Source: Octopus sinensis (lineage: Eukaryota). From it: a stretch of 64,000 nucleotides of DNA. Each line of letters begins with the position of its first letter. Positions within the stretch are counted from its first letter, which is position 1. Positions 16,429-48,858 of the stretch are shown in pieces. The translations under genes and the position numbers were made by a program. The notes under the pieces were generated by a model. The model saw only the letters and a program-made list of their open reading frames with translations, made no database searches and was not told the DNA's origin. Location: assembly GCF_006345805.1 (NCBI RefSeq), contig NC_042999.1, positions 139,748,001-139,812,000 of the forward strand, read 5' to 3'.

Positions 16429-16432
<4 letters not shown>

Positions 16433-16479
16433 AGCAAAAATTGAAAGTAATTTTTTTCTAACTTGCTGAGTCTGGAGAA

Positions 16480-18683: not shown

Positions 18684-18779
18684 ATCTATGTATCCACCTG
18701 AGGAATGGAGAACATTCATTGGTCTGACTGGTAGAGGATCAGGGTGGTCTCGTGTAGGTCCATTGCCACCAACAAAATG
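18684..18779 (-). CDS. Internal 96-bp exon completing the split THAP domains (HFVGGNGPTRDHPDPLPVRPMNVLHSSGGYID)
   Basis: Acceptor cttattttctttcactccag|CAT and donor GAT|GTAAGT give a phase 0-0 exon of 32 codons. It starts with the His-Phe missing from the four exons ending CSK/CTK. It is too short to appear in the ORF track. Confidence 0.85.
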
Positions 18780-19378
18780 CTGGAGTGAAAGAAAATAAGA
18801 TTTGATATTAGAACATAAGGTAATATGTTAGGTTTCAAAAATTTATCAGAATATATAAAGAAATTTTAGAATGAAGCATCATGGAAATAATAAGTAGTCA
18901 ATTGAGACATACACCTACCCACTACTAGATGTAGAGTATTCGTGCTATATTACTTGCAAACTAAACTTTGTGTATGTGTCTGTGAGTTGACTACTTCCAT
19001 TATCTGAAGCTTCATGTTAAAATTTCATCACAGAAAATCAATGTCCAATGTTGCCTTAAAATTAAAAAAAATCTATGGAACTATGAAGTTATTTGATTAT
19101 CAGTTTCCCTGGAGGTCATTTGTGGCTGCCACTTAACAGGTCAAAACTGAACTGGTGCCACTAGCAGTTAATTCCTGGTGTACAGCACACTCAGATATAA
19201 AACAGTGCTGTTGGTAATTAATTAGTTAAGACAAGCAAATAGTGAAAGTAATACAGTAATAAAATTAAATAAGGATTATTATTATTATAACGCCCTTTTG
19301 TTGATATTAGCATTGGATTCTATATACAACCACTTATTGCCCTATTCTTTTAAGATCTGTTGACATGGTGCTATTTGA

Positions 19379-20348
19379 AATCGCATATTTCTTACTGCAT
19401 TTTACTGTGGTATGGAAATATCTAGCAAACAACACATTTTCATCCAGCATTTATTGTTCACATTACCACCCTTACATATATTTCAGCTCTTTAATGCCCT
19501 ACTTCAGTTCATTGGCACTTCTGCTTTTCATGCAGGTAGAACATTATTCAACAAACCCCATCAGAACTTTTCCACATTCACTGTTCTATGGCTACCACAC
19601 ACATTAACATATACTCCATGCAATCTACTTTTATTGTAAATACAGAAAGTATAATTTTAGCATGTAAGTTATATGCCTTTTATTTTTGAAATTTCTATTA
19701 AGAATTTACTTTAAGAGTGCATAATGACATCTCTCACCCAAACAACCCAGCTACAAAGAAATGCTTACCAACCACATGGTTTGGGTTCAGTCCCACTGCG
19801 TGGCACCTTGGGCAAGTGTCTGCTATAGCCTTGGGCTGACCAAAGCCTTGTGAGCGGATTTGGTAGATGGAAACTGAAAGCAGCCCGTCGTATATATATA
19901 TATATAGCAGACACTTGCCCAAGGTGCCACGCAGTGGGACTGAACCCAAACCATGTGGTTGGTAAGCATTTCTTTGTAGCTGGGTTGTTTGGGTGAGAGA
20001 TGTCATTATGCACTCTTAAAGTAAATTCTTAATAGAAATTTCAAAAATAAAAGGCATATAACTTACATGCTAAAATTATACTTTCTGTATTTACAATAAA
20101 AGTAGATTGCATGGAGTATATGTTAATGTGTGTGGTAGCCATAGAACAGTGAATGTGGAAAAGTTCTGATGGGGTTTGTTGAATAATGTTCTACTTGCAT
20201 GAAAAGCAGAAGTGCCAATGAACTGAAGTAGGGCATTAAAGAGCTGAAATATATGTAAGGGTGGTAATGTGAACAATAAATGCTGGATGAAAATGTGTTG
20301 TTTGCTAGATATTTCCATACCACAGTAAAATGCAGTAAGAAATATGCG

Positions 20349-20351
<3 letters not shown>
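19379..20351. repeat. Near-perfect 449-bp inverted duplication (arms 19379-19827 and 19903-20351, 75-bp spacer)
   Basis: The arms are reverse complements with one mismatch noticed. The mirrored ORFs 19412-19639(+) and 20091-20318(-) differ only as HAGR vs HASR. Confidence 0.93.
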
Positions 20352-20395
<44 letters not shown>

Positions 20396-20606
20396 GTATG
20401 TATGTATTTGTGTACACGTTTGTTCCTCCACCATCACTTGACAACCGATGCTGGTGTGTTTACGTCCCCGTAACTTAGCGGTTCGGTAAAAAGAAACCAA
20501 TACAATAAGTACTAGGCTTACAAAGAATAAGTCCTGGAGTCAATTTGCTCGACTAAAGGTGGTGCTCCAGCATGACAGCAGTCAAATGACAAACAAGTAA
20601 AAGAAA
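19756..20606 (+). mobile_element. Same SINE family, split at its (TA)n linker by the inverted duplication
   Basis: The 5' half (19756-19902) and 3' half (about 20395-20606) both align to 30030-30422. Confidence 0.8.
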
Positions 20607-20826
20607 GTCAAGCTGAAAGGTTGTATTAATAAGAGAGAAGGTGGGCATGAGAACCTAGTATCTGGATATGTAGTGTCCACGTACCTGCTTATACATACAC
20701 ACACACAGGCAATTATGTGAATAAACAAATTGGATGTATCAACTATATTAGTTTGGAAATGAAATATGAAGTATGTATACATGCATAACAAGAGAAAGCA
20801 GAAGATAGATACTTTCAGATAATGAA

Positions 20827-20827
<1 letters not shown>

Positions 20828-20869
<42 letters not shown>

Positions 20870-20880
20870 ATATATATATA
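20828..20880. repeat. (TA)n microsatellite; others at about 20352-20395 and 40915-40965
   Basis: Read directly from the sequence. Confidence 0.9.
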
Positions 20881-22770
20881 GGTCCAAGTTACAGAGTACA
20901 AACAACAAAGAAAATTTAAAAAAAGTTTTTGAAGTCCAACAGCGGGGACTCAGAGATCCATAATATTGTTGGTAGATTTAGTTCATTACATGCAGCTGTA
21001 TGGATGCAATTAACATCACTTTACAAGTTTTATTTTTCAAGCTCAAGATCTAAATTAAGTGCAAAAATTTCTACTACCACAAATGTTCCGGTGTATTACT
21101 GAGAAATTTATATAAAGCGAAAAAAAGCTTCTACGCAAACAATTCTAGACTTGTTATTTAAAAAGAAATCTACATGTCTGTCTAAGAGTGCTTGTTGAAT
21201 TGGCAATCGTGTCTACAAGTGATGGTGGCATGAGTCTAGTGCAAGTGAAATTGATTCAGAAAATGATTATAATAATAATATTTTTTATTATAAATGATCT
21301 TGATATTCTTTTGACTTTACATAAAATATTCTTTACATTCTACTGTTGTTTTATTGCCATTTATCTATCAGTATTATAAATTTTACAGATAAAATATTTT
21401 TTTCTGGAAAATTATTGTTCTGCTTTATGTGTTTTAGTTTTACAAGCTATCTCTGGGAAAATATTAACTTGTATATCAAGGCATAACTGTATAAATAGAC
21501 ACATGGCCATATGAACAGAGTTAACTTCATAATATGTTCTCAGGATCTATTTAAGTGGCAACTTGGGCAAATGTCTTGTACTACAGCTGCAGGTCAACTA
21601 ATGACTTGTGAGAGAAATTGGAAAATGGAAACAGTAGGGATGCCTGTTGTGAGTGTGGATGTTTATATTCCTAGTTAACAATATGACATGTTTTCAAAGA
21701 TCATTGGAATGAAAAAAATACCTGAATTTAAATCAGGTAATGGTTGGGAACTGGAAGAGTTGAGTTAATAAAAAAAAATTGCTCCAGTCCTTAATAGAAT
21801 CCATTGAATCTGATTATATGCGTTTGTTTAGCCCTAAGTCATGACTGGGTGTCCCATGTCCTCCATACATTCTTAAAATGGTAGGGTGTGATTTGAAAGA
21901 ACATCTGCTATTTAATTAGTTAAGCCAAGCAACTAACTGCACAGAGCTCCTTGTTTAGCCCCAAGTCATGTTTGGTCGGATTGATCAATGGTGAAAGACA
22001 GGTTGTCTGTTTTTATTTCATCAGGTATTGATTCCAAGAGTTGATGAACCTGATCACAAGTGTAACTTCAAAGTCAGATTTCACTGTCAATCTTTTCTTT
22101 GTAAGCATAAGTTTTAAGCTCTATATATATTTAGAATTGTTTCAGTTAACGTTTGAACGTCTTGCTAAGTCATTATGTGCCAGAAGACATGACTAGATGT
22201 ACACACACACACAACAATAATATATAAATACGTACGAAATATGTATGTGTGCATATACTGTTCTAACAGTCGATAATAGAAAGTGGAACCCTTCTTATTT
22301 TGGAATAAATCCATGGGCAGTTTAATATTTAATTCAATGTTATTGTGTACATAAGTATTTGTGCATTCTAATCCACATTGCTGGAAAAGTATAAACATTG
22401 AAATTTTTTTTTAAGAAACATAATTCTTGAAAAAAATGCTTTAGTAGTAAAAAAGTTCGAATAACGATTTCTGATGTATAACAAAGCATGTGGATAACAT
22501 CTACCTTTCCCTTCACTGTTTTCTTTTTGACAAACTCAAGACGACCTTTTTAAAGTAAGCTATCATCAGATACGTAATACATGCCATCGAATTATTTTTG
22601 AAATATATCATAGAAAATAACAAAAAAGTCCATACATTGCAAATGAAGAAAATTAAACAGATTTAAGTTAATTTAGAATTAAGTAGCCTTTAAAGATGTA
22701 ATGAATGTAATAAACAAGTTTGATACAATATTATATATATATTATATATGTGTATGTGTGAATTACTTAC

Positions 22771-22947
22771 TAAGAAGGAATAACAAGGTTTTTTATAATG
22801 ACGAGCGAGTGTGGCTTTAGGGATTGCGAACTTCTTAGCAGCTTTTCTAATACTGAGACTTCCAGACAGTACTGCTGATACGGCAGAAACCATCTGGCTA
22901 GATGACCACTTCCCATTGTCTGTTTTCCGGACATACGACTGAACCAT
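22771..22947 (-). CDS. Variable first coding exon V7: pipsqueak-type HTH (59 codons)
   Basis: MVQSYVRKTDNGKWSSSQMVSAVSAVLSGSLSIRKAAKKFAIPKATLARH matches the HTH_psq of pogo-like transposases. Donor TTA|GTAAGT after 22771 is phase 0. Upstream acceptor at 23000-23001. Confidence 0.82.
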
Positions 22948-23670
22948 AATTGACTTCCAAAATTTCCAACAACAAATTTCTTCAGTAAGCCACTTTACAC
23001 TGAACAACTCAATCTTTTTATCATACTATACTTAGAAATAGCATTCGTTACCTTTCCATTTAATTTTATTAATACAGCAATCGATTTCATACGAAGTGCG
23101 GTAAAAACTATTTACAATAGTATTTTTACACTAAGCATTCTTCGATTCTTAAGTATGGAATACTAATAAAAATAAATACAAGAAAACGAACGCAAATTCT
23201 TTAACTATTTATTTTCTCCGCAGGGCCTTAATGTTTGTTTACAGACACGTCAGACGTGATCGAATAACGAATTTTTTTTAACAATCAGTCTTTTAAGAGG
23301 ATCATATCTTCAATATAAGCACAGAAAACTGTTAAGTTTTAGTTACATTAGATCTGACCATATAATAGATATGTTGACAATATAAAAATACAAGCCCCGC
23401 ATTAGGTGAAATCGTCGATTTTCAGAGTGTCTCTATGAAACAGACAGTCGGCCATTTTGTAAATCACAATTAAATAAACAACGTTACGTTTCCTTTGAGT
23501 ATCTGACATGAATTCTTCCAGATAAATTCACAAATCCAATAATATACATAAAAAAAAAAAAACTAGTTCTAAATATATAAAAAAAAAGCAAATGAAATAT
23601 TAAAAACTACGAAACACAGACAACCGCCACCGTGTCATCCACAGAGAAGACTTCCATAATAACGTTAAAG

Positions 23671-23684
23671 ATTCTCGCGAGAAT
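23671..23684. promoter_or_regulatory. Palindrome ATTCTCGCGAGAAT containing the TCTCGCGAGA (BANP/ZBTB33-associated) CpG-island motif, upstream of V7
   Basis: Perfect 14-bp palindrome read directly from the sequence. Confidence 0.45.
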
Positions 23685-23967
23685 TTGCCGAGATGTTGCA
23701 AAGCAACAAACTACTATTGAGAAAACATTGAAAGTTCAAGGAGGAGGGGAAGAGAGCCTGGCCACTCGATTTCGATTCTAATTTGGAGTCATTTTACTTT
23801 CATCTATGTTAATAACAACCTAAAAATGTTCCAGCCTATTCCTAATTTTTCTCTTAAAGAACAGTTTAGATAGAAATAGAAAGAAATATAAAAAGGTTAA
23901 TGAGTGTGGGCGCACGAAAAAGTAGCCTGGATTCAGTAGCGTAGTGTATATAGAGAATTGATTTTAC

Positions 23968-24357
23968 TCGCTTGTTCTTGTCATCCACTTTTAATTGCTG
24001 TACACATGTGAAATGAGTTGGATCCAACTTTAGACTTTTCAACACCCGCTGGCATGTCCTCCTGCTTATGTGAGACTCCTGCGCCAATTTACGTGTTGAC
24101 TTGTTTGGACTTCGAGTAATCCTTCGGCGAACCTCCTGAATAACTTCCGGCGTTCGAACTGTAGGGTCTCTTGGTTTGGGGGCGTTGTGCACTGACCCCG
24201 TAGCGCGCCACTTCTTAACCAACATTTGTATCGTTCTTTTTGCCGGTAAGCCTTTACCCGGAAACTTAACTTCAAAAATTTCACGCGTTTGCTTAACAGA
24301 ACCCGTTCTCACATACGTTTTCACAATCTCCATCCTTTCTGCTATTGAGTACGTCAT
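23968..24357 (-). CDS. Variable first coding exon V8: DUF4817-like plus second HTH of Tc1/mariner-type transposase, no catalytic domain (about 130 codons)
   Basis: MTYSIAERMEIVKTY..F..KFP..P.KRTI..LVKKWRATGSV..R..VRTPEVI..SPNKSTRKLAQE..ISRRTCQRVLK. Similarity ends where the catalytic region would start. Putative donor CGA|GTAAAA after 23968 is phase 0 but weak, so the 3' boundary is less certain. Confidence 0.78.
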
Positions 24358-24474
24358 TTTGCAGAAAAAAACCAGAGATGTCAACTCAACGCAACCATAC
24401 AATCAACTAATGTGGTGGGGATAACGTAGCAAACAGTCGACTAGTACGCCATCTTTGATCAGCAGTTACACGCG

Positions 24475-24689
24475 GTCGAAATAACACAATGACACATGCA
24501 AACGAAAGGCCGAATGCTTTTTTTGCTTGGGTAAATTTATTTCTGTATTCACACTATGCTACGGAACCCAGGCTAATTTTTCAGTCGAAATAACACAACG
24601 GCACTTGCAAACGAAAAGCTGGATATTTTTCACATGTTTTATTTTATTTTTGTATTTACACTACGCTACAAAATCCGGGCTACTTTTTC
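24475..24689. repeat. Diverged tandem duplication, unit about 109 bp, upstream of V8
   Basis: GTCGAAATAACACAA..TGCAAACGAAA..ACACTA.GCTAC..GGCTA.TTTTTC begins at 24475 and again at 24584. Confidence 0.8.
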
Positions 24690-29990: not shown

Positions 29991-30029
29991 ATACCTTGCC
30001 CACTTCAATTACATATTTTTGTTTAATTC

Positions 30030-30422
30030 AGGAGTGGCTGTGTGGTAAGTAGCTTGCTAACCAACCACATGGTTCCGGGTTCAGTCCCACTGCGTGGCAT
30101 CTTGGGCAAGTGTCTTCTACTATAGCCCCGGGCCGACCAATGCCTTGTGAGTAGATTTGGTAGACGGAAACTGAAAGAAGCCTGTCGTATATATGTATGT
30201 GTGTGTGTGTGTTTGTGCGTCTGTGTTTGTTCCCCTAGCATTGCTTGACAACCGATGCTGGTGTGTTTACGTCCCCGTTACTTAGCGGTTCGGCATAAGA
30301 GACCGATAGAATAAGTACTGGGCTTACAAAAAGAATAAGTCCCGGGGTCAAGTTGCTCGACTAAAGGCGGTGCTCCAGCATGGCCGCAGTCAAATGACTG
30401 AAACAAGTAAATGAGTAAATGA
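30030..30422 (+). mobile_element. Apparently full-length tRNA-head SINE of an Octopus-like family
   Basis: A-box-like TGGCTGTGTGG and B-box-like GGTTCAGTCCC, a central (TG)n tract and a tandem GTAAATGA tail. Homologous copies occur elsewhere in the window. Confidence 0.85.
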
Positions 30423-31864: not shown

Positions 31865-31895
<31 letters not shown>

Positions 31896-32736: not shown

Positions 32737-32934
32737 CTTTGAACAGACATATTTATTCTGATCGATCTTGAATACATTTAGTTGAGAATACGGCCGACCG
32801 CATGCTTCAATCCATCGCAAACACTTTTCTAGCTTTGTACGCGGTTTAGGAAAAGGAATGAAAAATCCACCGTTTATTCGTTCTGGGTACCTTTCGTCGG
32901 CGTTACACAAACCCCACACACATCGGCGCACCAT
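32737..32934 (-). CDS. Variable first coding exon V9: split THAP, N-terminal part (66 codons)
   Basis: MVRRCVWGLC..FFIPFPKP..CLRWIEACGRP..YVCSK|. Kozak GCCATGG, donor AAG|GTAAGG in phase 0, strong upstream acceptor ctcccctccctgcag. Confidence 0.88.
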
Positions 32935-34960
32935 GGCGAGCTGACTGCAGGGAGGGGAGAGAGCTCAGTAACAAGAGTTAGAGGCAAGGGGAGAGCACAA
33001 CCGACAACTACAACATACATAACTAATGCTACTAAATACCATCGTCACTACAGCTAATTTAAACGCCAGACTTCTGGATGGAGCTGCCAACCGTTTCATG
33101 GTTTTATTAGTTGAACAGAAGCGCATGAGCACATTAACCAACGAGAAAAGAAAGGACGTAAGTAATGAAATCAACAGTCAGATAAAGACGACTTTTGGAT
33201 TCCACAATAATACTAAAGAAAAAAAAAACCTACACTGAACGGTTTGAAAAAGTAAGGAAATTTACACTCAGTAAACTTTATTGCATTTGGTTATTTACCT
33301 TTCAAAACATATTCACAACTAAATCAGCTTAATAGTCCTACCCAGCTCCCAAACGAAAACGTCATTTCATTACTACTACTACTATATATATTTTGTGGTT
33401 CATGGCAATAAAAGTTTAATATGATTTTAATGACTTATACGCGCACATTTCTGCCCTTTATTGACACGACCAGTTTTAGATTGATTACGGATTTATTTCT
33501 GATAAATATCTACGATATGAAAACGAACCCAAAACAGTTACGTCCACTTGACAGCTGAAAATATAAAATCTTCCCTCCCCCCGCCAAAGGGGTGGGATGC
33601 ATGTTGTACACCTCCATCAATTATTATATTGAAGCATCCAGAAATGTATATTTCTGAATAAAGAACGTTGCAACAAAGTCTTTACATGAAGATAGAAAAG
33701 GGCAATTATAAAATAGCACATTTACATCATGCACACACTAGGACCAAATTAAGATTTAATGAGAAATTCCAAATTGCTAAAATCTATTCTCAGTATTTGT
33801 TCTATAATTATTTAAGCATTTTATTTATTCATATGAAATAATTATACTCGTTTCCCTTACTCCGGTCTTAATCGCTGAAACCACCCTTTGCTGACCATAA
33901 ATGTTTTAGTGCTATCTTGACTCTTCATATTCAGGCAAATAAGGACTTCACTCACTCTGTTCAGAATGACCGCCTGCAAAACAGGGACGTTATTATCATC
34001 GTCAAGCCAGGGCACTAATAAATTTTCCAGTTTTTTCCCACAGTCTCATCTACTACAAGGGTTTGGTACACCATGCATTTGTTTCTGCGTGTACACTTTT
34101 TTTTAATGTTGTTCATCATTGTCGATACAATAGAAGGTCTAGACTCGACGCCTAACAGACAATCGGCAGAAGAATTATTTTCTCAACTGTATTTTACATT
34201 CTAGTCTTCCCAAACGCAGACACTGCACTACGCTTACAGAGCCCGAGTAATTCACAGTTAGGACGTTATAAGTTGAAAACTCACCATAAACAATTCCTGG
34301 CATCACTATTACTTCATTATTATTATTATTCCACCCGTAACGCACTACGAAGAACAAAAGAAGCGTATTAGGATTCACAGGCACTGCTTCGAGGTATTGT
34401 TACTGGATTGCGATTGTTAATTAAAATGGAGCTTGTGTTTAATCATGTTTGATGGCAAAAGATAAACGTCTGATTCGAAGCTACCTAAAACAAGGATGCA
34501 ATTTGAAGGAAATGTGATTGCTACTTCAACCAATTCAAGATTCGATGCAGTGTAAGGCTCCTTCGTCGGCTCATGTAGGGAGAATCAATTGGATCTGATT
34601 TAAGTGAAATTTGGGTGCTAATTCTAAAATAAAGGGATCATACAGAGTTCATTATCTATATAAGACAGCAGGGTGTAATTTAATTACGATTTGCTCCCCT
34701 TGCTGACTCATAGATAGCATAAGACGATAAATTATCAAGCCAGAAATGGCATGTGAAATTATTGTCTACAAATATTGGTTTAAGAGCTTAAGAGAGAAAG
34801 CTTCTCATAGACCTGACACAAATGTCTGCAACAGAGTGGACTCCGCTAAAGTCAACACAAAACCAGGTGGTGGTTAAACAGTGCCACGCTTATAAACAGA
34901 GGCATATTTTGTTTCCATAACAAACAAGAATAAACAAATGTATTATTAATTCCAGCTTAC

Positions 34961-35167
34961 CTTCGAGCAGACGAAGTGATGCGATTTAATTTTATTAATA
35001 TTCAGCTGATAGTAAGGCCTGCAACATGCATCAAGCCAACGTATACAACGCTCCAGAGAACTCTTAGGCTTAGGAAAAGATACAAAAAACACGTTCAGCA
35101 TGTGAGGTTTATGTTTGTACCGACTGTCACTACGACAAGTACCCCAAGCGCAACGCTTAGTTACCAT
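34961..35167 (-). CDS. Variable first coding exon V10: split THAP, N-terminal part (69 codons)
   Basis: MVTKRCAWGTC..FFVSFPKP..CIRWLDACCRP..FVCSK|. Donor AAG|GTAAGC in phase 0; acceptor catctttccag 11 nt before the ATG. Confidence 0.88.
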
Positions 35168-36478
35168 TTTTGGAACTCCTGGAAAGATGCTTTAAAAAAA
35201 TCGTAACAAGGAGGGGAAAATTATATATTTGCTAGTAAAACTGATATGCTTTACTCTTGGCAAAAGCGGAAATACTGTTTGTACCGCGGTCATGTGATAT
35301 ATAAACACGATAACACCGGAAACAGTTGGGATGCAAATGGTAGTATATATGAACTTCGAGAATAATTAGTTCAAATGTTTAAATAGGAATTTTTGGCATT
35401 ACAATAAACTGGTCCCAGTACTTCGATGGTACTTAAAGAGTTAAATGACTTAAAAATACTGCAATGTATTTCACCCTGAGGTTTCATGATTACTAACATC
35501 AAGTACTAAGATAAACAGTTTAACTGAGACCTTATCTTAAAACGAACCTAAACTGAATTTCTACTTAATCCTCACAGCGGTAACATTTATAAACATAATA
35601 TATAGTTTACTAATTAACATTGTCGAACCAAGTTTTGGTTTTCGTCCCTAAATGCATATTACCATGCATAACTCAAGTTTTCACCATTACTTCGATACAC
35701 ACCACGCGCGCTGCAAGACATTCGAACATGACAGAAGGCAAAACATTTTTGTATCTCATCATCAACTTCACTCTTCTCACGCCAGCATTTACCATACAAA
35801 GATTAATGCACATTATATACGGTTAAAGACATTTAGTCAATAGACAAAATTCTGTTTGGAAACGTCACATTTAAATACTATAAATATTAAGGTAATTTTT
35901 TTTTTCAACGATGGTACGTTTCAGCAAGAAGTATCAGGTATCTCCTGTGCTCAATATTTTTGGCGGACTTGACTTTTAAGTAGATTTTTTTTTCTTTCTT
36001 AATCCTCACAGATGAAGCAACAAAAATGTAGGAAGAACTAATATATGATGGAAAAGTGAAAATAATAAAATAAGTACTGAAAAATGAAATGGGTTTTAAA
36101 AATACTTTTTCAATTTGGCACAAGTCAGTGGCCATCAAAACGGTATAAGTAATTTTAACAAAACAAGCAATAATTTTCTGTATTTTTTCCTAAACATTCA
36201 GCTTTTATATAAACTTAAAAAGAAATTTCCATAGTGTGCGGAAGTTAAAGGACATTGGAGAAGCAATAGCATAAACTTTATAGGATACGCTCAACAAGTA
36301 ATTTTATTCTATTATCACAAGTGAAGATATAAATATAAAAAACTTTATCCGTTTATATTTAATTTGCATTATAGAGAATATTAATGAGTAAAATTAAATC
36401 AACTCATAAGAAGAAAATCCAGATTTTTAAGTTGTTACGATTACAAAGAGGCTGAAATTAGAAGCCAGAGTTATTTAC

Positions 36479-36685
36479 CTTTGAACAGACGTAAAGGTTT
36501 TTGTTTCCGTCAACAATGTTAACGTTCAGTTGCTCGGGAATTCGACCGCAACGTTCAATCCAACGAAGACATTTGTCTCGTTGTCTCCGCGGTTTCGGAA
36601 ACGGTATGAATGTAACACCACCGAACAGACGTTCAGGATAACGATCGTCTGTATTACACAAACCCCATGCACAACGCTTCACCAT
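36479..36685 (-). CDS. Variable first coding exon V11: split THAP, N-terminal part (69 codons)
   Basis: MVKRCAWGLC..FIPFPKP..CLRWIERCGR..YVCSK|. Donor AAG|GTAAAT in phase 0. Confidence 0.88.
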
Positions 36686-36979
36686 TACACTATTCTTAAC
36701 CGACTAGGCAACAGAAAAAGCTTGACTGACTAAAATGGCTGACATGACAGAACAAGAGGGGTGTGATGATAAGTCGAAGAATCTGATTGGTTGAAATGGG
36801 TGACACAGATTGTTGGAGGTCACAACATGAATAAGCCGTTTGCGCTGAAAGGTTATGAATCTTGAAGAAAATTTAGATAAATGTGAACCTCTCTAACTTG
36901 CGCCAATAAAGTATACTTTTAAATGGACACTCCACTGCTCTGAGCTGAAGACAAATTGAGTAATTTCTGGGCAGGAGGT

Positions 36980-37125: not shown

Positions 37126-38733
37126 TTAAAGAATAAACTCAATATATAATTCATTAGTATCCAACAGAAAAAAAGGTAGCATTCTCTAACCTATCTTGTT
37201 CGATCCCTTTCCATACAATGGAATGGCTGGCCGCATTCTCTCATAGCATTGGAAAGCGATCCAAGTACAAGCTAAAGAAAAAGTGCTTACTGCGAAGAAT
37301 ATTGCATTCTATTTGAGCTTAGCCGAGTGAAGTAGTTTGACTTGTAGGTTACGTGATACTTACCAGCGCCCCTATACCTGATTACCAACAGAACACAACG
37401 CCAATTTAATACTACTTCAAAGAAAGTGCACACCTAAAGTTAACGCGTACAGACAGAAATGACACTGGCATAATTTATGTTCGTACTTTCTGGAGATTCT
37501 TAATTGTGGACATGTTGATCGTTATATCAAAAACAAAACTAGATATATTTGGATTAAAACTAAATCAGGTAATTTGATTGACTACAAAAAATGTTGGGGA
37601 GGGGAATATAGGTAAAAGTAAAAACAAAAGATTATATCAACACATCTTTTCGAAGAACACAAAATATTTGGAAAACGAAAGTTTGATCCAGTCAACTCTA
37701 CAGCTCCGGTTGCTGCAAGAGACCCATCTGGCACAGAATACATTGTTGCTATTTAAACCCAGGCCAGCAATGATCAAGCACTGTAGCCGCGATCAATCTG
37801 TGTCTTTGAAGTAGCTTAGGACATAATCCAAAGTGTCCTTTCAGTACGATGTACTTGGAAGGGAATTTCCATGTTATTACCGGGGTACTGGGCGACCACG
37901 AAGCGCTCTCGCGTTGGTTTTGGTTGTCAAGTATGGCAAATATGGTAATAGATCGATGATTGTTGACGTTCGTGTGTCAAATCTTTCGTACGGTTCATTC
38001 ATTGGCAGCGGGGAAAAAAATGCTACATATATAGGGATTAAGTTAAACTTCAATAGCACCAATAAAAGTTGATGAGAATAATTTCTGTTTTTAAAAGAAA
38101 TCTTTTAGACCGAGGCTTTGCTGAGGAACCGCCTTGAAGAATTTTAGTTGAAACGAATCGGCACCAATATTTTTTTTCAAACCTGGTAATTATTCCATCG
38201 TTCGCTTTTGCCGAATCGCTAAGTTACAAGGATGTGAATACACACACACAATGGGCTTCTTTCACTTTCCGGCTACCAAATTCATTCACAAACTTTTGGT
38301 CGGCTCAAAGCTTTAAAAGCCACACTTGTCCAAGGTGCCACGTAAGTGAGACTTAATTCAGCAAACTTCTTACACATGCACCTATTTCTGAGATATTTTA
38401 CCGGAAGAAGCATAGGCATTACTTTTTTAGATGTATTTACTGATAAATGTAAACTTTACTTTACAAATGTCTTAGAGCAGAAAAGCTAAAATAAAATAAA
38501 CCGCTCTTTCAAAGTTTGGCTTTATGTATTAAGATATCCACAAAATGGGATGGGCATTCTACATAACAAGCCTTTGGCCTTCAAAAATGTAAAATATCAA
38601 GAACTCCAACTTGTTATACTATTTCATATTCCTACCTGTGAAAGCCAATCATTCTTATCTTAGATATCTTAACAGACTGTAAAAACATCTTAAAACAAGC
38701 GTGATATCAGATATTAATCAGAATGTCACCTAC

Positions 38734-39891
38734 CTGGTCCTTCTCAGAATCATTCCGTATCAATGTTACCTGCAGGTCCAGAGAACCATCACCAGAATTA
38801 TCAATAACCTGAGCATTCGTTGAGCTAGCTAAAGGCGTTGCACCAGAGTTTGAAGAATGATTTGATTCACCCTCTAAGATTTTATGCTCGAGACGAGAAT
38901 CTTTAGCATACGGCAAAGTAAAATTGTAACCCCCAGATAAAACGGTCTTATTGGAACCAGTTATTCTAATGGAATGGTTGCTGTACTTTTGTGAGAGTGA
39001 ACAGGCAAGACTAAGTTCAGGCATAAACCTTTGTAAAGTATTTCGACCTACAGCAATGTTTCGATACCAGACTGAGCCTTCGGGCGAATAAGGAGATATC
39101 GGTCTTTGCCATAATCGGTGGCAAAGCGGATGGAGTTTGCTCTTATATTTTTCAAATGATTTCACAGGACAGTTTGGATCATTGGGCCTTTCAACGATAT
39201 ATGTTAATTCTTCAATGTCAATTGTAGACGGACCTGTTGCTTGGATGTTAGAACCAGAGCACACTGATACGGTCTTGGTCTTCAAACTGCGTGGGGACTG
39301 TTCTTCAGCTTTACACATATACTTATACCCGGTCTGCGAATCAACGCGGACTTGGAAAGTCTTTTTAGTCATTTCTACCATACTCTGGGGACCTTTTCGG
39401 AAGAAATATAACCGGATCTCAAATTGAACTTTATTCAGTAAGCCTAAAGGTGTATTGATGTCAAAATAAACAGATGAATATAACTTCTCTAAATCTTCAT
39501 CCAAAATAATAGGATGATGGGTCACTTCACCTTTACCACTAGTTTTCAGCTCATTAACAGTTTCTTTAAAATGAGCGTTAGCTTCTTCAAATATTTCATC
39601 TTTAATGAGATCAAATGTTTTGAGATACGGTGGAAGCCGAAAGTATCGGTTAAGTGCATATCGGAAGCCTTCCAAACTGGTCACCTTATACTGATCACCA
39701 TCACGCTTTCGTACATCTCGGTAAAATAATATCAGCAGCTCACTCAGTTCTTTGGCGTCCAAAGATTCGAAATCTGTGGATAAACTCTTATCTTTTAAAT
39801 AATCCCGTAAAGCACGAGCCGCTTTTTCATTGGCACGCCTTGTATTTTTAGGTACGGCCTTATGTTGCCCATCAACAGCAAAAGTATCCAT
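38734..39891 (-). CDS. Variable first coding exon V12: Crypton-derived tyrosine-recombinase-like DUF3504 domain (KCTD1/QRICH1/ZMYM-type), about 386 codons
   Basis: FYRDVRKRDGDQYKVTSLEGFRYALNRY, NTPLGLLNKVQFEIRLYF, CPVKSFEKYKSKL, VGRNTL..FM and YSNHSIR. Donors CAG|GTAGGT (38734) and CAG|GTAACA (38770) are both phase 0. Acceptor actaacttgacag|t lies 1 nt before the ATG. Confidence 0.85.
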
Positions 39892-40911: not shown

Positions 40912-40959
<48 letters not shown>

Positions 40960-41040
40960 TATATATAAATAATGTATGTGTGTGTGTTTGTAAAAAAAAA
41001 ATCCGAAAGAAGAAGCGAACTCTAAGATGTAGAACAGTAT

Positions 41041-41212: not shown

Positions 41213-42526
41213 TAATCCGAATTTCGGATAACATACCAACTCTACTAACAGATATACGAGTCATCTTCTCCCTGACTTATGGTCTCTTAGACGACACGTG
41301 TGCGTGTACACACACACGACATGCTAAATCAAATGTGGCTTATGTGTTTACACGTGATACCAAATTATTTGATTTCAATTTCAACGTATAAATCTCGATT
41401 TAGTCAAGAAAATCTGGTATTTGTGATGTTCATGCTTTTATAATAGTATTAAGCAATATAAGTAGACTGTATGGTAGGATTGGCGTTTAACTTATAGAAA
41501 TCCTTGTATATTATATAAATTTTAGAATACGTACAAGAATATTTAACTTACGATTGCAGATATGACTAATAGTATATAATAGACAATACATCATTTTTGA
41601 AAATTTAACTTCAATGAAAGCAATTTCCAAACTTTGCTTAAATTTAATCTAAATAACCAACAACACATTCTGATGCTGGACCTTACGGGTGATTTCAAAG
41701 AGTTTGAAAGTATCAGTTAAGTGTTTCTTAAACAACAAAGCGGTGAGGTAGGTGGGATAGGGGACCAGCATTTTATTGCCTGATTATCAGGACAGAACGT
41801 GTTTAAACACAGCAACAAATGTGAGGAGTTTTGGAATGTGGTTGTAGAATTAGAATAAGCTGAGCAAGGTCAGATATAAAAGGCTTACAGCTGTTATGGT
41901 GTGACCTAAGGAAAAAATAAAAGTAGAAACCTCCAAGTTCGTGTGTGTGCACTCAGTAGAATTTAGTTAACAAATGGTTATAACATTTCATTGAATCTAT
42001 TTCATTACACAAATTATTGTACTCATTTAATAGTAAAGAAAAAATAAATACCCATACAAAGTATCCTCAAACTGGAGACCTGGCTAAATGCTTTGCAACA
42101 GGGTGGGATACTATTAAGCTACCCAAGGTGTCAGGTGGTGGCAATGAACAAGGCACTGGATTAAGTCTCCCACCTAAGTAGGCTACAGCAGGATTTGAAC
42201 TAAAAACTCAATGAGATAAGACAAGAACTATAAGGCATCTATTGTTATGTTCTTACAGATTTGACAATTCCATAGTCACCCACAAAAAGATGAAAGGCAA
42301 AACTGACCTCTGGAATTTTAAGTCAGTGTGTGACATGGCTGAACAAATACATCAAGACTATCTGATGCTCTAATGACTACAAATATGTATCAGTTCACAA
42401 GCAAATTTTTAAATTAGCAAGGCCCAAACGGAGCATGGAAACAACCTCAGTCACCCAAACATTAATTTAACCAAATTAATATGGCACTGATATTACAAGT
42501 TTAATCACACACACATATAAATGAGA

Positions 42527-42729
42527 GAGTGCTGAAAAGTGCCTGATTCTTAGGGTATCATGAAAGACCTGGTTGGAGGCTCGACATTCCAAATTATTTT
42601 ACAGGGCTTAGAAAAACTGAAGAATTGCTGCAATAAGTGTGTGAATCTGAGAGAGGAATATGTTCAACAGAAACATAACTGATCCTCCTTATTTTCCTTT
42701 ACCCAAAGCCAGGAACTTTTCAGCAGTAC
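42527..42729. mobile_element. Mariner-type MITE
   Basis: Imperfect TIRs GTGCTGAAAAGTGCCTG / CCAGGAACTTTTCAGCAG. Confidence 0.55.
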
Positions 42730-44334
42730 ACACACACACATTGCTTTTAACATCCACTTTTTAATGATTGGGTTAGATGGAATTCATTGAGACAAATTGT
42801 CAATGGTTGAATGCCCTTCTTGTGGCTAACCCTCACCTGTTTCCAAGCAAAGCAATATTTCCATATGGATGGACATGTTATCACAGAAAATTGGAAATGA
42901 ACAACACTTGTAAGACAGTTTACATTCATTTATAAATATTGTGTGATGTTAAGGCAAAAAGATACAAACACACTCATGCATGGGTTTGGTTGGCTTGGGG
43001 GTTATAATAGAAAATAGTAGCCCAAGGTGCTGCACTGTGTGACTGACCCAGAAACCATGGCATTGGGAAGTCAGCTTCTTAGTAGCAGAGCCATGCTGGC
43101 ACACAAATATATTTGAATGTACATACACACAAAGATGCACTTAACCATCATACATATGTACATTTACAAGTATACATTTTAAATTGTTTTAGTCAGGAGA
43201 AAATCCGGTGCTCAAAACCTTGCACAGGGCCACTGTGAATAGAGAAAAGGGAAGAGGAAGGCATCCTTAAACTAGAGAAAAGACCCGAATGCTTGCGACA
43301 GATGGATTCTGCCGAAGGTGCAAGGTAGTGTTAATAAGAATAAAATTAAAATATTGATTTTGTTGTTGTTGCAGTATCATGTCAGAGCTCTAAAATACAA
43401 ATCTAAGGGTGGGGGGAAACGTAAGAGCCCAAAAAAAGGAAAGCGAGTGGGTGTAAGAAATATAAACAATTTTTTTTGGGGGGGGGGGCACCTTCCCACC
43501 TCAAACTGGAGAATTGCAATCTTCCTCTATTCCACAGGATTACAAGACACACACGTGGAGTGGGGGGGGGAGATACTTTTAAGAAAATAAGCAAAAGATA
43601 AAAAATACACGGAGAGTGTTTTGAAGCCCGCTAAATAAATATCCATGGTTATAACCGGGTTCCTCTGTATTAAGAAAAAGAATGTGATGTTTTTATTTTA
43701 GCTGGAATTTCTGTTCCATAAAGCGTTTATGCTATATACATACGCCATAAACTCTACATGACTATTTTCTTAAATGACACAAGCATAATAAATATGCGTA
43801 ACATGACTAATGTTATACTGACGGCATATGCAGTTCAATAAATTTCACTGAGAGTATGTATAGTCGATTAAAGTAACTAGTGCAAAACTGATATCTTATT
43901 TTTATCGATTTCGCATCCCACCTCCCTCAAGTATCAGATGATGCTCGGGAGGTGTACTTGGCTATCATACACATTTTTAGAGGGGAATACCAACATTCCT
44001 TCAAGCACAGTACAAACTGTGGGAGTCGTGCATACTTCATTTAATTACTGCATTGTTCTTTCTTCTTTACTACCTGTTTGCGATCTTTTAGTTCAAATCT
44101 AAAATTTTTACAGTGGTCGTAACCGGTTTTTCTAGTACGTAAACTTAACTTATTAAGGAATGAACTCAGAAAATGCAGTAAGATAGTTTCAAGAGAAATG
44201 TACTGTTTCTGCTGTATTAATGAGAATGTAACAGTAACAATGTGTATAAAATATTTCCCATAAGTTACTCACACATTTTAAACAAAGGCGCGATCGATTG
44301 GATAAAATCCAGCAATTTATATGGCAGTTAATTT

Positions 44335-44661
44335 ATCGACGAAGTTTTCGATTCGCAACCACGTGGCTTCAGGTTCAATCCCACTGCACGACACCTTAGG
44401 TGAGTGTCTTCCACAACACCAGATCGACCAATGTTAATGCCTGGTGAATGAATTTAATAGGCAGAAATTGTGAAAACTCGTCTTACGTGTAATAGTGTGC
44501 ATTTACGTATTGAACAGACTCCCACTGCTTATCGGTCCGGCAAAAGAGACCGAGAGAATAAGTATCTAATTTTAAAAAAGCACTGGAGTCGAATTGTTCG
44601 ACTGACCCGTCAAGACGGTGCTCCAGCATGGTCGCAGTTCAATGACTGAAACAAGAAAAAG
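44335..44661 (+). mobile_element. Diverged copy of the same SINE
   Basis: GGTTCAATCCCACTGCACGACACCTTAGG ... GGTGCTCCAGCATGGTCGCAGTTCAATGACTGAAACAAG. Confidence 0.75.
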
Positions 44662-44745
44662 AATAAGATAATACTGTGATTATAACCAACAAAATTAATA
44701 ATAATAATGATCATAATAATGAACAATAGTAAAGGTAAGCCTTAC

Positions 44746-45096
44746 AGTAATCCGTTTGTCATCCTCATTAGTCTGTTTTTGTGGTAAAGATCCTTTAGTT
44801 TGAAAAAGAGTTGGTATTGCACCAGGTTTCAATTTCATTCGTGGTAATTTGCAGCGGTAGCCGACCTCCAAATACCGACTTTCGAAATGGCGCGTACAGA
44901 TTCGAATCTTGCACCGTATTTTTGCAATGTTTGAACATGTCATATCAAGAAAATTCTCCATCTGGCCAGAGTCAATACCCAGATTCTGGGCCCAGATCCG
45001 ACATTTTTCTCGGTCCTTCGGAAAACAATGCAACCGAATATGACGAGGTAATCGACCGTCGTGGCTGGTGCAACGAAATGCTATACAATGTGGCAT
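44746..45096 (-). CDS. Variable first coding exon V13: THAP zinc finger (117 codons), paralog of V16
   Basis: MPHCIAFRC..HCFPKD..W..ICTRHF..LKPGAIPTLF. Donor ACT|GTAAGG in phase 0. Confidence 0.88.
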
Positions 45097-48000
45097 GTGT
45101 TAATTCAAAATAGATGAAGGACAGTAAAGAGCAAATTTAAAAGTAAAAATTTTTAATGTTTATTTTGGAGAGTATGTATAAAAATTTGAATAGCTCCGTA
45201 ACATTGAGTGAAGGTAAATTTAAAAAGATCAGGTTATATTTTTTACTGTCTCGTATCAACAAACGAGTATGATGCTGAAATTCAACAGTGAAACGCGGTG
45301 ATTCTACGGAATAAATGGAAATGTAAGGTAACTTAAGGCGTCTATGAAATAGGTGATGCACGCGCGTATTCAGAAATACATACGAGCCTATATAGTAGGT
45401 GTGTGTCCGTCTAGGTTCACTGGATTAGGATAATTACCATTTTAAAATTTTAAAGTGTTTAAGAAAATTGATTTAAAGCATCAAAGACATATGGTCACTG
45501 AAAAGCGGAACAGTGAATGAATAAAAACTAGAGAGAGAGAGTGAGTGAGTGAGCGAGGGAGAGAGAGAGAGATAGTAGTCTAACAGCTTAACAATTGCGA
45601 CCCAGTGTTGAGTCGGTGAATATGATTCATTGGGTCATATATGGCACATAACTTGTATTTGCACCAATAGGAGAGCGTGTTGCTAAGAAACAGCGAAAAA
45701 GATAGAAAGAAACGAATAAACGACACGGAAGAACAGAGATATATAAATAGAAAACAACTTAAATCCAATTTCGATATCATATTTTAATTTCTTAACCCAC
45801 GATTTGACATACTTCAACAATAACAATAAATTCACCACAAAAGAAATTCATTTTTCGTTTCGAAGAAGGAAGAGTAGAAAGTCTTTTATAATTTCATTTA
45901 CATCTAAGACTATATTATAGGAATATAAATGGATCTTAGTACTTGACTTAATGTTTTTTTCTCGACCCCCGGATTTTCACTTAGAACGTAGCTAAATACT
46001 CTTAAGTTCGACACAAATGATTTTGCAATCTACCATTATTGATAGAAAATTAGGTTCATAGCTTTCTGCATGTATTAGTCAATATATGTACAAACCGAGC
46101 TCAATTCAATCCAACTCATAAACATGCTGAGCAATGTCAAAAGAACAAATGCCAAGATTCACATTTAAGTTTAGAGAGTAGCCCCACCATCCCTCATTAA
46201 AAATCCACGGACATTTACGGAAATTTTTCTAAAATTTACGAATATTAAAACTTGGTTATCAACTCAACTTTTTAAGCAGTTAACACTGAATTACACCATT
46301 CACTTACGATTTATTTTACCAAACACCAAATCTATAAACAATGTGGGAGCGAATGCAAATTAGTATTTCCCCCAAAACCTTTAATGCAGAAACGCATAAA
46401 CTACCATTAAATGTTCAAACCGATGTCACCTCTATATGTTAAAAGTTTATCGACTGTTCATAGAATATTTGCATCCAAATTTCAAAGAGAGCCATAATCA
46501 TAATTTATACGGTCTGAGACAGTTCTTATTTGTTGTTACCACTACATGAATTGGTGAACATCACACCTTTGACATGGATATGGTCTCTGCAACTGGGTGT
46601 TCTCGTTAACACCATTCACCCCACATTTACAAAGTGCTTGAGGGCACCTTGTACTCACATCAGAAGAGAGATTGTGATGTCCTTGACAGGCACAAAGGCT
46701 TCTTTTCATCGAATGTCGTCTGGTCATTTGTCAACCACTTAACAGAGTTTTAATGCAGTGAAAGAAGTCACCTTGTTTTTGCACGATTAAAGTGTCCTCT
46801 CTATTCAATGTTGTTTTCGTTCTTTCAAAACAAACGTGACTGAGGGGGTAAATAGAATAACGAGATGATCAAGAAGATAAGAAGATTACATGAATGTGAC
46901 AGAGGAAAACAATGAGCGTACGGTAAAGGAGAGAGTACTGAAAAAGAGACTAAGAATATATATGTATATATAGCATCATTAGAGTCAAACGCTAGAAATC
47001 CAAAAACTTTCCGTCTCTGCTGATGACACCATTCAACCCATTACACAAGTGACTGCGTTAACACTGTTGATGTGGGAATTTGCAGAAAAATAATAGTTAG
47101 CATCGATGATTCATTAAAATGTTTAGGTGAGCTAAATCATAAATGTAAAACTTCATGGATTCTACTAAATACTCATATCATTTGAGCAATTTTTTTTTTT
47201 ACACACTCGGAGCATTTGGAACATGCTGTATTTACAGAATTACAAATTACATTAAATTAATATATATATTTTTCTACACAAGTTAAGCAATTCTAAACTG
47301 CAAGTCAAGTGAAATTAATACAACCGGAAATATAAAAATAAGCTTGCTTATGCAGTCATTTCACTTAGGACTTGTTTACATTCAGATATTCTGCAAACTA
47401 TCAGGAAATACATAGTTTTTGGCTAGGCACTCAAAAGTAAAATGATTACGGTACAGGGTTACAAACAGTGCTAAAGTAAAAAAAAAAAAAAGCCAGAAAC
47501 ATCACTAAATGCAACAGTCATATGGAAACCCGTTTTCTGTGGAAGGATTAGTTAAGAATAAATAACTGCAAATTACCAAGTCTACATACACAAGTTAATT
47601 TAAAACACCCACCCCCAATCTTCAGATATATATCAGTGAAGAAAAGTACATTTTCTTAAAACTGTTGTGATATTCATAGATTTTTAAGAATGCTGTAAGA
47701 AAATCAATGGGCCATAGACTAGATTTGTTACGAGCTTATCACTTTGTGATGCTCAAGATTGAATATAAAAATTTGCTAGGCAAAACAGCTGGATGGAAGG
47801 ACACTCTAACCAGTTCAAAAGAAAGAGTTGTATATATTTCATTATAATCGCAACATGAAACTAGCTGTAAAGGTGTATAATTTGATGAAGTTTGGTATTA
47901 AAGAAAGTCTTTATGTAAGATCCAACTGAATCTGATAAAGTTGATTAATGAGCTTTGTGCAGTGTTCTATTGCAAAAAAAGATGTTAAAACTGACTAGGA

Positions 48001-48657
48001 TAATTTACCTACTTCACTAAAACCAATGAAGCTTTTGTTGATACCAACAAAAATGTTATTTCTATTACGGCTTGTCTACTGAACTAGTGAAGATGGTTAA
48101 GCAGGATATAGTCAATACATTCTGATTAATATCTATTACCAAAGGCCAACAAAAATTCTCGCTGTCAATCTTAGGCTCTACTAATAATGAATATCAAGAA
48201 CACATGGGAAGCAAATATATTGACTTATTTACCTATTTTAAAAAACTAAAATGAATGATCATGAGTTGCTCCTGAATATTTTACGATAAACAAAAATGAA
48301 AGCTTGTAATGAAAGCTTGAGAGGAATATTCATTGTATTACTTTGAAATTAAAAAGGAAATAAAGTAAAAACTAGTGTTTACTGCTTTTAAAGTAAAGCT
48401 TGTGTGTAGTAATGTAAGATGTACAATATCGCATGAACAAACATTCACTTTGAATAATGTAATATTTTGCATGTTTAGATAAGTAACATAATACATAATT
48501 TGAACTGTGTGTGTAAGTTCGCGTTCTCACTCGAATACATAGGCACACAAACATATCTCGACTTGCTAGAGACATTAGTTTTCAAATTAGGATAAAGGCA
48601 AACATTAAAAAAAAACAACAACCTGAGATACAGTTCATAAAAATGATAAAATTATAC

Positions 48658-48858
48658 CTTGGTACAAATATATGTTGCTCTGCTGATGCGATTAACGTTG
48701 AATTGATAGGAAGGTCTACCACAGCACAGAATCCATCGTAGACATTTCTCTAGGTTTTGTTTGGGCTTCGGAAAAGGTATGAACTGAACACCGCCCGCCA
48801 ACCTCTCGGGAAATCTATTGTCAGTGTTACATGTACCATAACAACACCGTTTAACCAT
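48658..48858 (-). CDS. Variable first coding exon V14: split THAP, N-terminal part (67 codons)
   Basis: MVKRCCYGTC..FIPFPKP..CLRWILCCGRP..YICTK|. Donor AAG|GTATAA in phase 0; without splicing a stop follows one codon later. Confidence 0.86.

Follow-up and report, generated by a model that had tools for sequence, protein, structure and literature searches.

Four half-THAP exons and one candidate shared second half in a same-strand array of transposase-derived DNA-binding exons of Octopus sinensis

How could four exons that break off inside a THAP zinc finger, each just short of the histidine that would complete the metal site, give rise to whole DNA-binding domains? The question is raised by a stretch of 64,000 nucleotides (nt) from Octopus sinensis (contig NC_042999.1, positions 139,748,001 to 139,812,000; hereafter the window), whose DNA is AT-rich (31-40% G+C) and free of N gaps. 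Four exons on its minus strand (V9, V10, V11 and V14) run from an ATG to a phase-0 donor of the form C-S/T-K/GT (here and below, a slash next to GT or AG marks an exon boundary), and a single exon, E, located 14-30 kb downstream of them, opens with the histidine and continues a THAP. The best-supported reading is that the four half exons would take turns splicing to E, which on the sequence at hand we give about an even chance. The five exons are as follows.

48658-48858, minus strand: V14, half-THAP first coding exon of 201 nt (67 codons), MVKRCCYGTCN...YICTK/GTATAA, phase 0, weak donor
36479-36685, minus strand: V11, half-THAP first coding exon of 207 nt (69 codons), MVKRCAWGLCN...NLYVCSK/GTAAAT, phase 0
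34961-35167, minus strand: V10, half-THAP exon of 207 nt (69 codons), MVTKRCAWGTCRSDSRYKHKPHML...FVCSK/GTAAGC, phase 0
32737-32934, minus strand: V9, half-THAP exon of 198 nt (66 codons), MVRRCVWGLCN...KYVCSK/GTAAGG, phase 0
18684-18779, minus strand: exon E, 96 nt (32 codons), phase 0-0, encoding HFVGGNGPTRDHPDPLPVRPMNVLHSSGGYID

The half exons share the N-terminal pattern M-V-[KRT]-[RK]-(R)-C... and stop right after the third zinc-ligand cysteine and two further residues, so placed that the histidine of C-x2-H is absent in all of them (4/4). Each keeps its start codon, the C..C...C ligands, the FP.P core and the GT donor; V10 (MVTKRCAWGTC...HFVCSK) is the most divergent. Splice sites were scored with a generic home-made matrix and ranked against the minus-strand AG or GT sites of the window, which placed the donors of V9 and V10 in the top 0.2% of GT sites (V9 score 11.4, top 0.1%), the strongest in the region, and that of V11 within the top 1.4%. 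V14 is preceded by an in-frame TGA 12 codons 5' of its ATG, with no AG between the two. V11 and V10 are 1.3 kb apart, V10 and V9 2.0 kb, and a regular-expression (regex) search together with low-stringency tblastn on both strands detected no further half exon in the window. The Met-Val start also creates an ATG/GT sequence in all four (36683, 35165, 32932 and 48856, minus strand), with a moderate donor-like score right after the ATG for V9, V10 and V11 (5.6-7.1), which probably reflects just the MV start of the family.

Exon E is bounded by tttcactccag/CATTTT...ATAGAT/gtaagt; its acceptor, with a branch-point-like CTAAT, ranks within the top 0.4% of AG sites, the donor within the top 1.3% of GT sites. 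Fifteen AG/CAYTTY sites were found on the minus strand, and a pyrimidine tract (0.85) combined with a THAP-like continuation was seen at 18779 only. Likewise, among the 45 AG/CAY sites 3' of V14 that are followed by at least 12 open codons, a good acceptor and similarity to the family coincide in E alone (acceptor score 6.6 vs 3.4 for the runner-up). Regex and low-stringency tblastn searches in six frames, the latter with second halves from three subfamilies, yielded no other HF exon, including in the 18.7 kb downstream of E. A THAP is continued by no other exon of the window that starts with His, and E is likewise the sole second half in the 48 kb downstream of the half exons; it would supply the zinc-binding histidine, an invariant phenylalanine and a PDP motif. 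The first-pass annotation had reported the four truncated ends at GT donors lacking the histidine, and had picked 18684-18779, phase 0-0, as the sole HF continuation; the coordinates, the sequences and the uniqueness of that exon were reproduced in the acceptor, regex and tblastn scans, and the situation it had said would overturn its proposal, an HF exon of its own close to each half, does not occur in the window.

Two further features lie around E. The intron that ends at E has, some 0.6 kb before the acceptor, an inverted repeat (19372-19827 and 19903-20358; 456 nt, 99% complementary, 75-nt loop) containing a piece that resembles a short interspersed element (SINE); the repeat is a foldback of very recent origin or else an artefact of assembly and, if real, would form a long pre-mRNA hairpin beside the exon. 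Downstream of E, a minus-strand open reading frame (ORF) at 17229-17444 with a reverse-transcriptase-like motif (ISKAFDHVWH, judged by eye) is probably a long interspersed element fragment in the following intron.

Joining to E changes how the half exons are recognized as THAP domains. Against the Pfam THAP profile (PF05485; gathering threshold 23.9 bits) V9 and V11 alone reached 19.1 and 21.6 bits, and V10 and V14 had no THAP match, whereas the joined products scored 30.1, 31.7, 32.3 and 31.2 bits across the four (V10+E, 31.7). The C2CH signature C-x2-4-C-x35-53-C-x2-H is satisfied only once the halves are joined, with the ligands at C5, C10, C64 and H67 in V9+E and at C6 (or C5), C10, C65 and H68 in V14+E; the x(53-56) spacer of the joined products reaches or slightly exceeds the published maximum. 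An AVPTIF-type C-terminal motif is absent, the Pfam alignment stopping at profile position 58-62 of 87, and in its place PDP[LIV]P is found across the whole subfamily to which these exons belong (ISL2EU, see below), not just at this locus. AlphaFold2 gave mean predicted local distance difference test (pLDDT) values of 78.8 for V14+E and 76.6 for V10+E, with a predicted strand-helix-strand core; both models are confident over the junction up to residue ~87-89 and end in a disordered tail (in V14+E, residues 68-87 are confident and the last 12 disordered). The earlier claim that the joined halves make complete fingers is supported by the scores (30-32 bits), with both models confident over the junction (pLDDT 77-79).

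An alignment of 18 sequences of the family has as invariant columns the third cysteine, a further conserved cysteine, the histidine, the phenylalanine and Pro-Asp-Pro, five of the seven being encoded by E. Since E holds the family-invariant part, it is not tied to one subfamily and ought to fit first halves of any of them; sharing is plausible on this ground. In the THAP1-DNA structure, bases are contacted by the N-terminal tail, the beta-sheet and loop L3, all located before the third cysteine, and the minor-groove loop L4 comes after the histidine (PMC2879526). Applied to the present exons, this layout would place the specificity head, which reads the major groove, in the variable exons and leave to E the last of the four ligands, the counterpart of L4 and the core HF...PDPLP.

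The origin of the split can be traced outside the octopus. A V11+E query retrieved relatives in bivalves, abalone and fish (for related Logan contigs, a mollusc origin was taken from the best matches only), and the complete ones read ...C[ST]K-HFVGGNGPTxxxPDP[LIV]P.... The short ORFs of many relatives run past C[ST]K into junk, revealing an intron at the same place. Four mollusc loci were informative, each with one half exon and its own HF exon 0.45-2 kb downstream, the intron codon and phase being identical to those in the window.

L009, Pinctada: half exon, 1.28-kb intron, HF exon
L010, Haliotis: adjacent YqaJ gene
L011, Tegillarca: 0.45-kb intron, followed by an HTH_Tnp_4 + DDE_Tnp_4 gene
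L012, contig from ENA: intron of about 1.8 kb, YqaJ ORF and DDE_Tnp_4 gene nearby

A phmmer search of 1.84 billion representatives returned 851 clusters, in nearly all of which query residues 1 to ~87 were matched in a single stretch at the N-terminus of the protein; the long members combine THAP, HTH_Tnp_4 and DDE_Tnp_4. ISL2EU transposons encode a transposase with DDE, helix-turn-helix (HTH) and THAP domains plus a YqaJ ORF (PMC4482050). Judged by homology, V9, V10, V11 and V14 descend from exon 1, and E from exon 2, of transposase genes of these PIF/Harbinger-related elements. E matches the second half of the family nearly residue for residue (HFVGGNGPTxDHPDPLP in Pinctada, Crassostrea, Tegillarca and several further relatives) and is evidently the true homologous second half of the ISL2EU-type THAP subfamily, apparently shortened to 32 codons by a new phase-0 GTAAGT donor. 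Within the C2CH finger, the ancestral intron separates exactly the third cysteine from the histidine and, because the same intron is present in ISL2EU genes in a 1:1 arrangement, the split finger was inherited and therefore not invented for combinatorial use. What is unusual here is the 4:1 ratio, the distance of 14-30 kb and the loss of all catalytic parts: a tblastx comparison with the four ISL2EU loci detected no remains of HTH_Tnp_4, DDE_Tnp_4 or YqaJ in the window, which thus has neither of the two hallmarks of the element, a transposase with THAP, HTH and DDE domains and a second ORF of the YqaJ type.

The four half exons do not form one recent set. V11 has a two-residue insertion (DGNKNL) in common with the Tegillarca and L012 copies, whose second halves are HFIDGEPTEQFPDP and HFPEEGPTEKFPDP; the nearest relative of V14 is of the Pinctada type, whose own second half, HFVGGNGPT, is of the same type as E. 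Since the subfamily indels and the relatives differ, the half exons represent two or more old subfamilies, and recent duplication at the locus does not explain them.

Purifying selection acts on the four half exons, judging from their substitution patterns. Among V9, V10, V11 and V14 the proportion of nonsynonymous differences (pN) was 0.21-0.36 vs 0.70-0.91 (saturated) for synonymous ones (pS). V11 compared with L001, a Logan contig found in eight runs, gave a pN of 0.053 and a pS of 0.745 (91% identity in protein, 80% in DNA), and the alignable parts were the exon and one 36-nt upstream block only. Four copies of exon 1 and one of exon 2 remain, all intact and on one strand, the rest of the elements is gone, and whole elements would not fit into the gaps of 1.3 and 2.0 kb, all of which argues that the half exons themselves have been retained.

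Upstream sequences suggest how some of them might be transcribed. The sequence CCAATCAG occurs twice in the window, each time on the minus strand and 5' of a half-THAP exon (~100 nt from the ATG of V11 and ~210 nt from that of V14), and is followed after ~50-60 nt by a GACAAAC / TCAGTCAAG-like motif in each case. The same CCAAT...GACAAAC arrangement stands 5' of ISL2EU exon 1 in Tegillarca, Haliotis and L012, and the V11 upstream block is 89% conserved in L001 across 36 nt. V11 and V14 seem to keep the transposon's own putative CCAAT promoter. Only these two exons are preceded by the CCAAT...GACAAAC / GCCATTTT motif; V8, another exon of the region, is preceded by AAGATGGCG. V9 and V10 have no CCAAT promoter motif. 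Two 3' splice sites 6-10 nt before the ATG of V9 scored 10.7 and 9.1 (top 0.1% of AG sites), and for V10 a site of moderate strength lies 11 nt 5' of the ATG (region 35168-35200, minus strand). Both exons may be fed by a non-coding leader exon, V9 probably by an upstream one, or the V9 site at 32940 could serve in-frame tandem joining.

49008-49074, minus strand: putative V14 promoter, GCCAATCAGC, ~50 nt, CAGACAAACA
36715-36790, minus strand: putative V11 promoter, CCAATCAG (36783-36790) and block GTCAGCCATTTTAGTCAGTCAAGC
32935-32985, minus strand: 3' splice site upstream of the V9 ATG, branch-point-like CTCTAAC, pyrimidine tract, CAG/TCAG/

The half exons and E lie within a larger array on the same strand. 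Between 3481 and 57882, ~16 transposase-derived DNA-binding ORFs follow one another on the minus strand, none with a catalytic domain: five complete THAPs, the four half THAPs, an HTH_psq, a DUF4817 + HTH_32 (mariner type), an HTH_29, a CENP-B_N + HTH_Tnp_Tc5 (pogo type), two DUF3504 frames and one basic ORF without a family. V8 and V7 sit between the half-THAP exons and E, and six further frames running from ATG to a phase-0 donor occupy 3481-11340, downstream of E; the basic ORF among them may be another captured DNA-binding head.

57523-57882, minus strand: V16, complete THAP first exon, phase-0 donor
51834-52928, minus strand: V15, DUF3504 (Crypton/KIAA1958-like) frame, natural ATG, phase-0 donor-like site, without the recombinase C-terminal part
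44746-45096, minus strand: V13, complete THAP first exon, paralog of V16 (62% of amino acids), stop one codon 5' of the ATG
38734-39891, minus strand: V12, DUF3504 frame, paralog of V15 (29% of amino acids), phase-0 donor score 11.0, without the recombinase C-terminus
23968-24357, minus strand: V8, mariner-type HTH (DUF4817 + HTH_32) first exon, 130 codons, CGA/GTAAAA, phase 0
22771-22947, minus strand: V7, HTH_psq first exon, 59 codons, TTA/GTAAGT, phase 0
11164-11340, minus strand: basic ORF, 59 codons, MGRPKKYATDEERRAAKALRERARRERETAEKRSRRLEKMR..., own ATG, phase-0 donor, no Pfam family
9992-10324, minus strand: HTH_29 frame
8252-8587, minus strand: THAP frame
4782-5234, minus strand: CENP-B_N + HTH_Tnp_Tc5 frame
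4208-4519, minus strand: THAP frame
3481-3855, minus strand: V2, unsplit THAP (…VCSRHFKDGEPSPQNPAPTIF), weakly related to the ISL2EU type, no C-x2-H intron

No copy of the array families was found on the plus strand, where the ten longest frames had no Pfam match; the ordinary repeats of the window, which served as a control for orientation, occur both ways. Each array ORF begins at the natural methionine of its domain and ends just past the domain in a phase-0 GT donor-like site; strong donor-like sites in the last 50 codons were in phase 0 in 15 cases vs phase 1 in three. V13, V3, V12, V8 and V14 cannot continue an upstream frame, because an in-frame stop stands just 5' of the ATG with no AG between. 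Relatives of V16 and V13 elsewhere have read-through ORFs that all continue '...|VR...', which fits a donor (GTAAG in both) conserved at that spot. In a close sister species, the V16 ortholog (contig L013) is 95.6% identical and ungapped over the exon, and its flanks are 80-82% identical with many gaps, pointing to clear host-level constraint on V16; for V13 the difference was less clear (exon 91.5% vs flanks 89-91%). As a whole, the region looks like a cluster of multiple variable first exons, comparable in anatomy to UGT1 or the protocadherins, and not like a 3' array of the lola/mod(mdg4) type.

Some repeated arrangements were also observed. A THAP followed ~5 kb downstream by a DUF3504 frame is found twice (V16/V15 and V13/V12), 12.7-13 kb apart, and in a more distant species a contig (L018) has a DUF3504 gene (1-1751) 8 kb upstream of a V16-like THAP (10001-10459) on the same strand, with no half-THAP or HF exon in its 14.7 kb, the contig ending 4 kb downstream. 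Derivation of V16, V15, V14 and V13, V12, V11 from one old block duplication was considered and rejected, V14 and V11 being in different indel-defined subfamilies; the idea does hold for the THAP pair V16/V13 and the DUF3504 pair V15/V12. Copies of a short interspersed repeat, which we took by eye for a tRNA-related SINE, lie at 12505-12645 (plus strand), 19762-19901, 30046-30198, 38238-38356 and 44528-44666 (74-91% identical, both orientations), and a 58-nt direct repeat (100% identical) at 1627-1684 and 1838-1895, 211 nt apart.

From this anatomy we infer the following course of splicing. V9, V10, V11 and V14 would be used alternatively as 5' coding exons, every one starting at an ATG of its own; a transcript starting at one of them, or spliced into it, would use its phase-0 donor, and this donor would join E over 14-30 kb, completing the C2CH site. 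V8 and V7 would be passed over without any special mechanism, because first exons lack usable acceptors. The donor of E would then join exons outside the window (its presence implies further exons, which are not within the window), or E would be terminal. E is the first good acceptor 3' of V7-V16, all of which are in phase 0, so it may join every upstream first exon; by default splicing, transcripts of V7, V8, V12, V13, V15 and V16 would then include it as a 32-residue linker. The first-pass annotation had seen a two-tier design of variable and constant exons nested in the larger array: the phases agree with it and E is the sole second half, while a separate tier is not required, and E may instead be simply the first exon that members of the upstream sub-array have in common. 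Its view of the half exons as internal variable exons had to be replaced, since they are ATG first coding exons, with a stop upstream of V14 and a promoter motif at V11 and V14. Docking or selector complementarity between the introns of the half exons and that of E was within the control distribution, in a crude and poorly discriminating RNAduplex test over 300-600 nt and by longest complementary words, and so gave no sign of pairing that might confine E to the half-THAP exons. As to how the arrangement could have arisen, we infer that one ISL2EU copy was captured first, providing exon 1, exon 2 and the new donor; later same-orientation insertions upstream of E would have brought promoter, ATG and donor and needed E only, so that their own exon 2 and catalytic part became dispensable.

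Several observations weigh against shared use of E. Junction reads, complementary DNA or gene models linking the half exons to E were not found, nor was an ortholog of E, V9, V10 or V14 in the sequence collections searched, and 1-18683 holds no convincing constant exon downstream of E by acceptor score and open frame. E could be a terminal exon, as read-through past its donor meets a stop after nine further codons. The V14 donor, GTATAA, is weak (88th percentile), and the strong acceptor 5' of the V9 ATG is an exception to a simple first exon with its own promoter. The second half proper to the V11 subfamily is HF[IP][DE][GE][EG]PTE.FPDP, not the type of E. The two best Foldseek matches in the PDB are THAP domains (2jm3 and 2jtg), but weak ones (E 0.1-0.8; TM 0.35-0.45). 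Host-level constraint on V9, V10, V14 and E is judged from comparisons of old paralogs, in which a low pN/pS could partly reflect selection in still-active transposons. Finally, V12 and V15 might be separate genes between V14 and E, possibly with their own termination, since their starts coincide with those of stand-alone homologs.

These points leave room for other accounts, of which the plainest is transposon debris: the half exons and E would be the leftovers of five decayed ISL2EU insertions, neither co-spliced nor expressed. The transposase family has hundreds of lineages, the four exons stem from different old subfamilies, a low pN/pS between transposon lineages may date from before the insertions, and no transcripts are known. 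Decay would nevertheless have spared exon 1 four times and exon 2 once, with frames, ligands and splice sites intact, and removed the remaining 3-5 kb of each element without detectable trace, in gaps too short for whole elements between V11, V10 and V9. The survivors share their strand with ~12 other DNA-binding ORFs free of catalytic domains, whereas real repeats face both ways, E has gained a new in-phase donor, and the neighbouring array exon V16 is clearly host-constrained, so we consider debris unlikely. Somewhat less improbable, although still doubtful, is one true pair among relics, a single half exon spliced to E (V14 by subfamily match, or V9 as the nearest) with the others silent or decaying. 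The relation is always 1:1 elsewhere, E is of the HFVGGNGPT type that goes with V14- and Pinctada-like first halves, and the promoter motif is at V11 and V14 only; yet all four keep start, ligands, core and donor, V9 and V10 have the strongest donors of the region, and the residues encoded by E are the invariant ones of the family. V11 bears on this account most directly: it is the most strongly conserved (91% of amino acids vs L001, with synonymous sites saturated) and has no second half of its own type, so that it needs a partner, for which the window offers E alone. We hold it to be an even bet that two or more of the half exons are in fact joined to E.

The partner might also lie elsewhere, in a His-starting exon beyond the window (for example below coordinate 1), with E skipped or a relic. 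The window does not contain the constant exons of the array, and with everything in phase 0 any phase-0 exon could join; but the sequence of E agrees exactly with the family, its acceptor ranks in the top 0.4%, it has a CTAAT resembling a branch point as well as a good donor, and another HF exon would add nothing. None exists within 18.7 kb downstream of E, and we regard this account as very unlikely. A gene of the lola/mod(mdg4) type, with a constant 5' part upstream of the window and the V exons as alternative 3' exons, would account for many DNA-binding domains on one strand and for the acceptor-like sites upstream of the ATG in V9 and, more weakly, in V10 and V11. These sites are, however, in three different phases relative to the ATG, in-frame stops stand directly 5' of the ATG in V13, V3, V12, V8 and V14 with no AG between, and the ORFs start exactly at the natural methionine and end in a phase-0 donor; such a gene is hardly credible here. 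Alternating use of E by the half exons is the reading retained in what follows.

Its components are known separately: the ISL2EU transposase THAP, host capture through transposon splice sites, and clusters of variable first exons. With ISL2EU the window shares homologous exons 1 and 2 (up to 78% of amino acids with the Tegillarca copy), the intron codon and phase and, at V11 and V14, the CCAAT...GACAAAC upstream motif; it differs in having no HTH_Tnp_4, DDE_Tnp_4 or YqaJ, four copies of exon 1 to one of exon 2, an intron of 14-30 kb instead of 0.45-2 kb, and an exon 2 cut to 32 codons. Clusters of multiple variable first exons include UGT1A, the clustered protocadherins and GCNT2 (PMC3325998, PMC1885805). 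Tandem same-strand first exons, their own start codons, one-phase donors that would reach the first downstream acceptor from far away, past the first exons in between, and putative promoter-like elements (V11 and V14) are common to these and to the present array, whereas here the variable part consists of DNA-binding domains from unrelated transposon families and not of paralogs of one domain, four exons break off partway through a zinc finger, so that the shared exon would have to complete the metal site, and the constant exons would lie outside the window.

Host-transposase fusions, in which the DNA-binding domain of a transposase is captured via splicing (Cosby et al., bioRxiv 10.1101/2020.05.07.082677), resemble the array in that an N-terminal domain is kept without the catalytic part and joined through the splice donor of the transposon; they are single captures, as opposed to ~16 captured domains and a 4:1 split finger. 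RefSeq models with an ISL2EU-type THAP exist in Haliotis rufescens (THAP+BTB, LOC124116783) and Dreissena polymorpha (THAP+C2H2; two paralogs and an isoform without the THAP), and to judge by their domain make-up they are independent host captures of this THAP type in molluscs. The lola and mod(mdg4) genes of Drosophila combine a constant BTB part with many alternative DNA-binding 3' exons. They too make many proteins from one locus that differ in the DNA-binding module, some of it transposase-derived, but with 3' exons and common-phase acceptors, whereas the exons here are 5', begin with ATG and end in donors, and the array did not group with them on that test. The P-element KP and 66-kDa repressors are THAP-only products that compete with the transposase; like the array they provide transposase THAP domains without the catalytic part, but they are encoded by the element, whereas these appear fixed in a host array. 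In the literature searched, we found no description of a zinc finger that has several alternative first halves and just one second half for all of them, of a first-exon array of DNA-binding domains from unrelated transposons, or of both features combined.

A same-strand, uniform-phase array of transposase domains free of catalytic parts may thus be an architecture for DNA-binding proteins undescribed in the literature searched. A bolder reading, for now a long shot, takes the window as part of a single protocadherin/UGT1-like locus for DNA-binding domains, with ~16 or more promoter-driven heads from ISL2EU, P/hAT-like THAP, Tc1/mariner, pogo and Crypton elements joined in phase 0 to common effector exons, four of the fingers being spliced from variable halves and one common half. 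Such a locus would be a heritable catalogue of proteins recognising the ends of the source transposons and, if so, a protein-level counterpart of a PIWI-interacting RNA (piRNA) cluster or of the KRAB zinc-finger arrays. If the junctions to E exist, the metal site of a zinc finger would be completed through alternative splicing, four DNA-reading heads would share one His-bearing tail, a single short exon making four domains functional, and the locus would show a route by which a host can continually add transposase DNA-binding heads.

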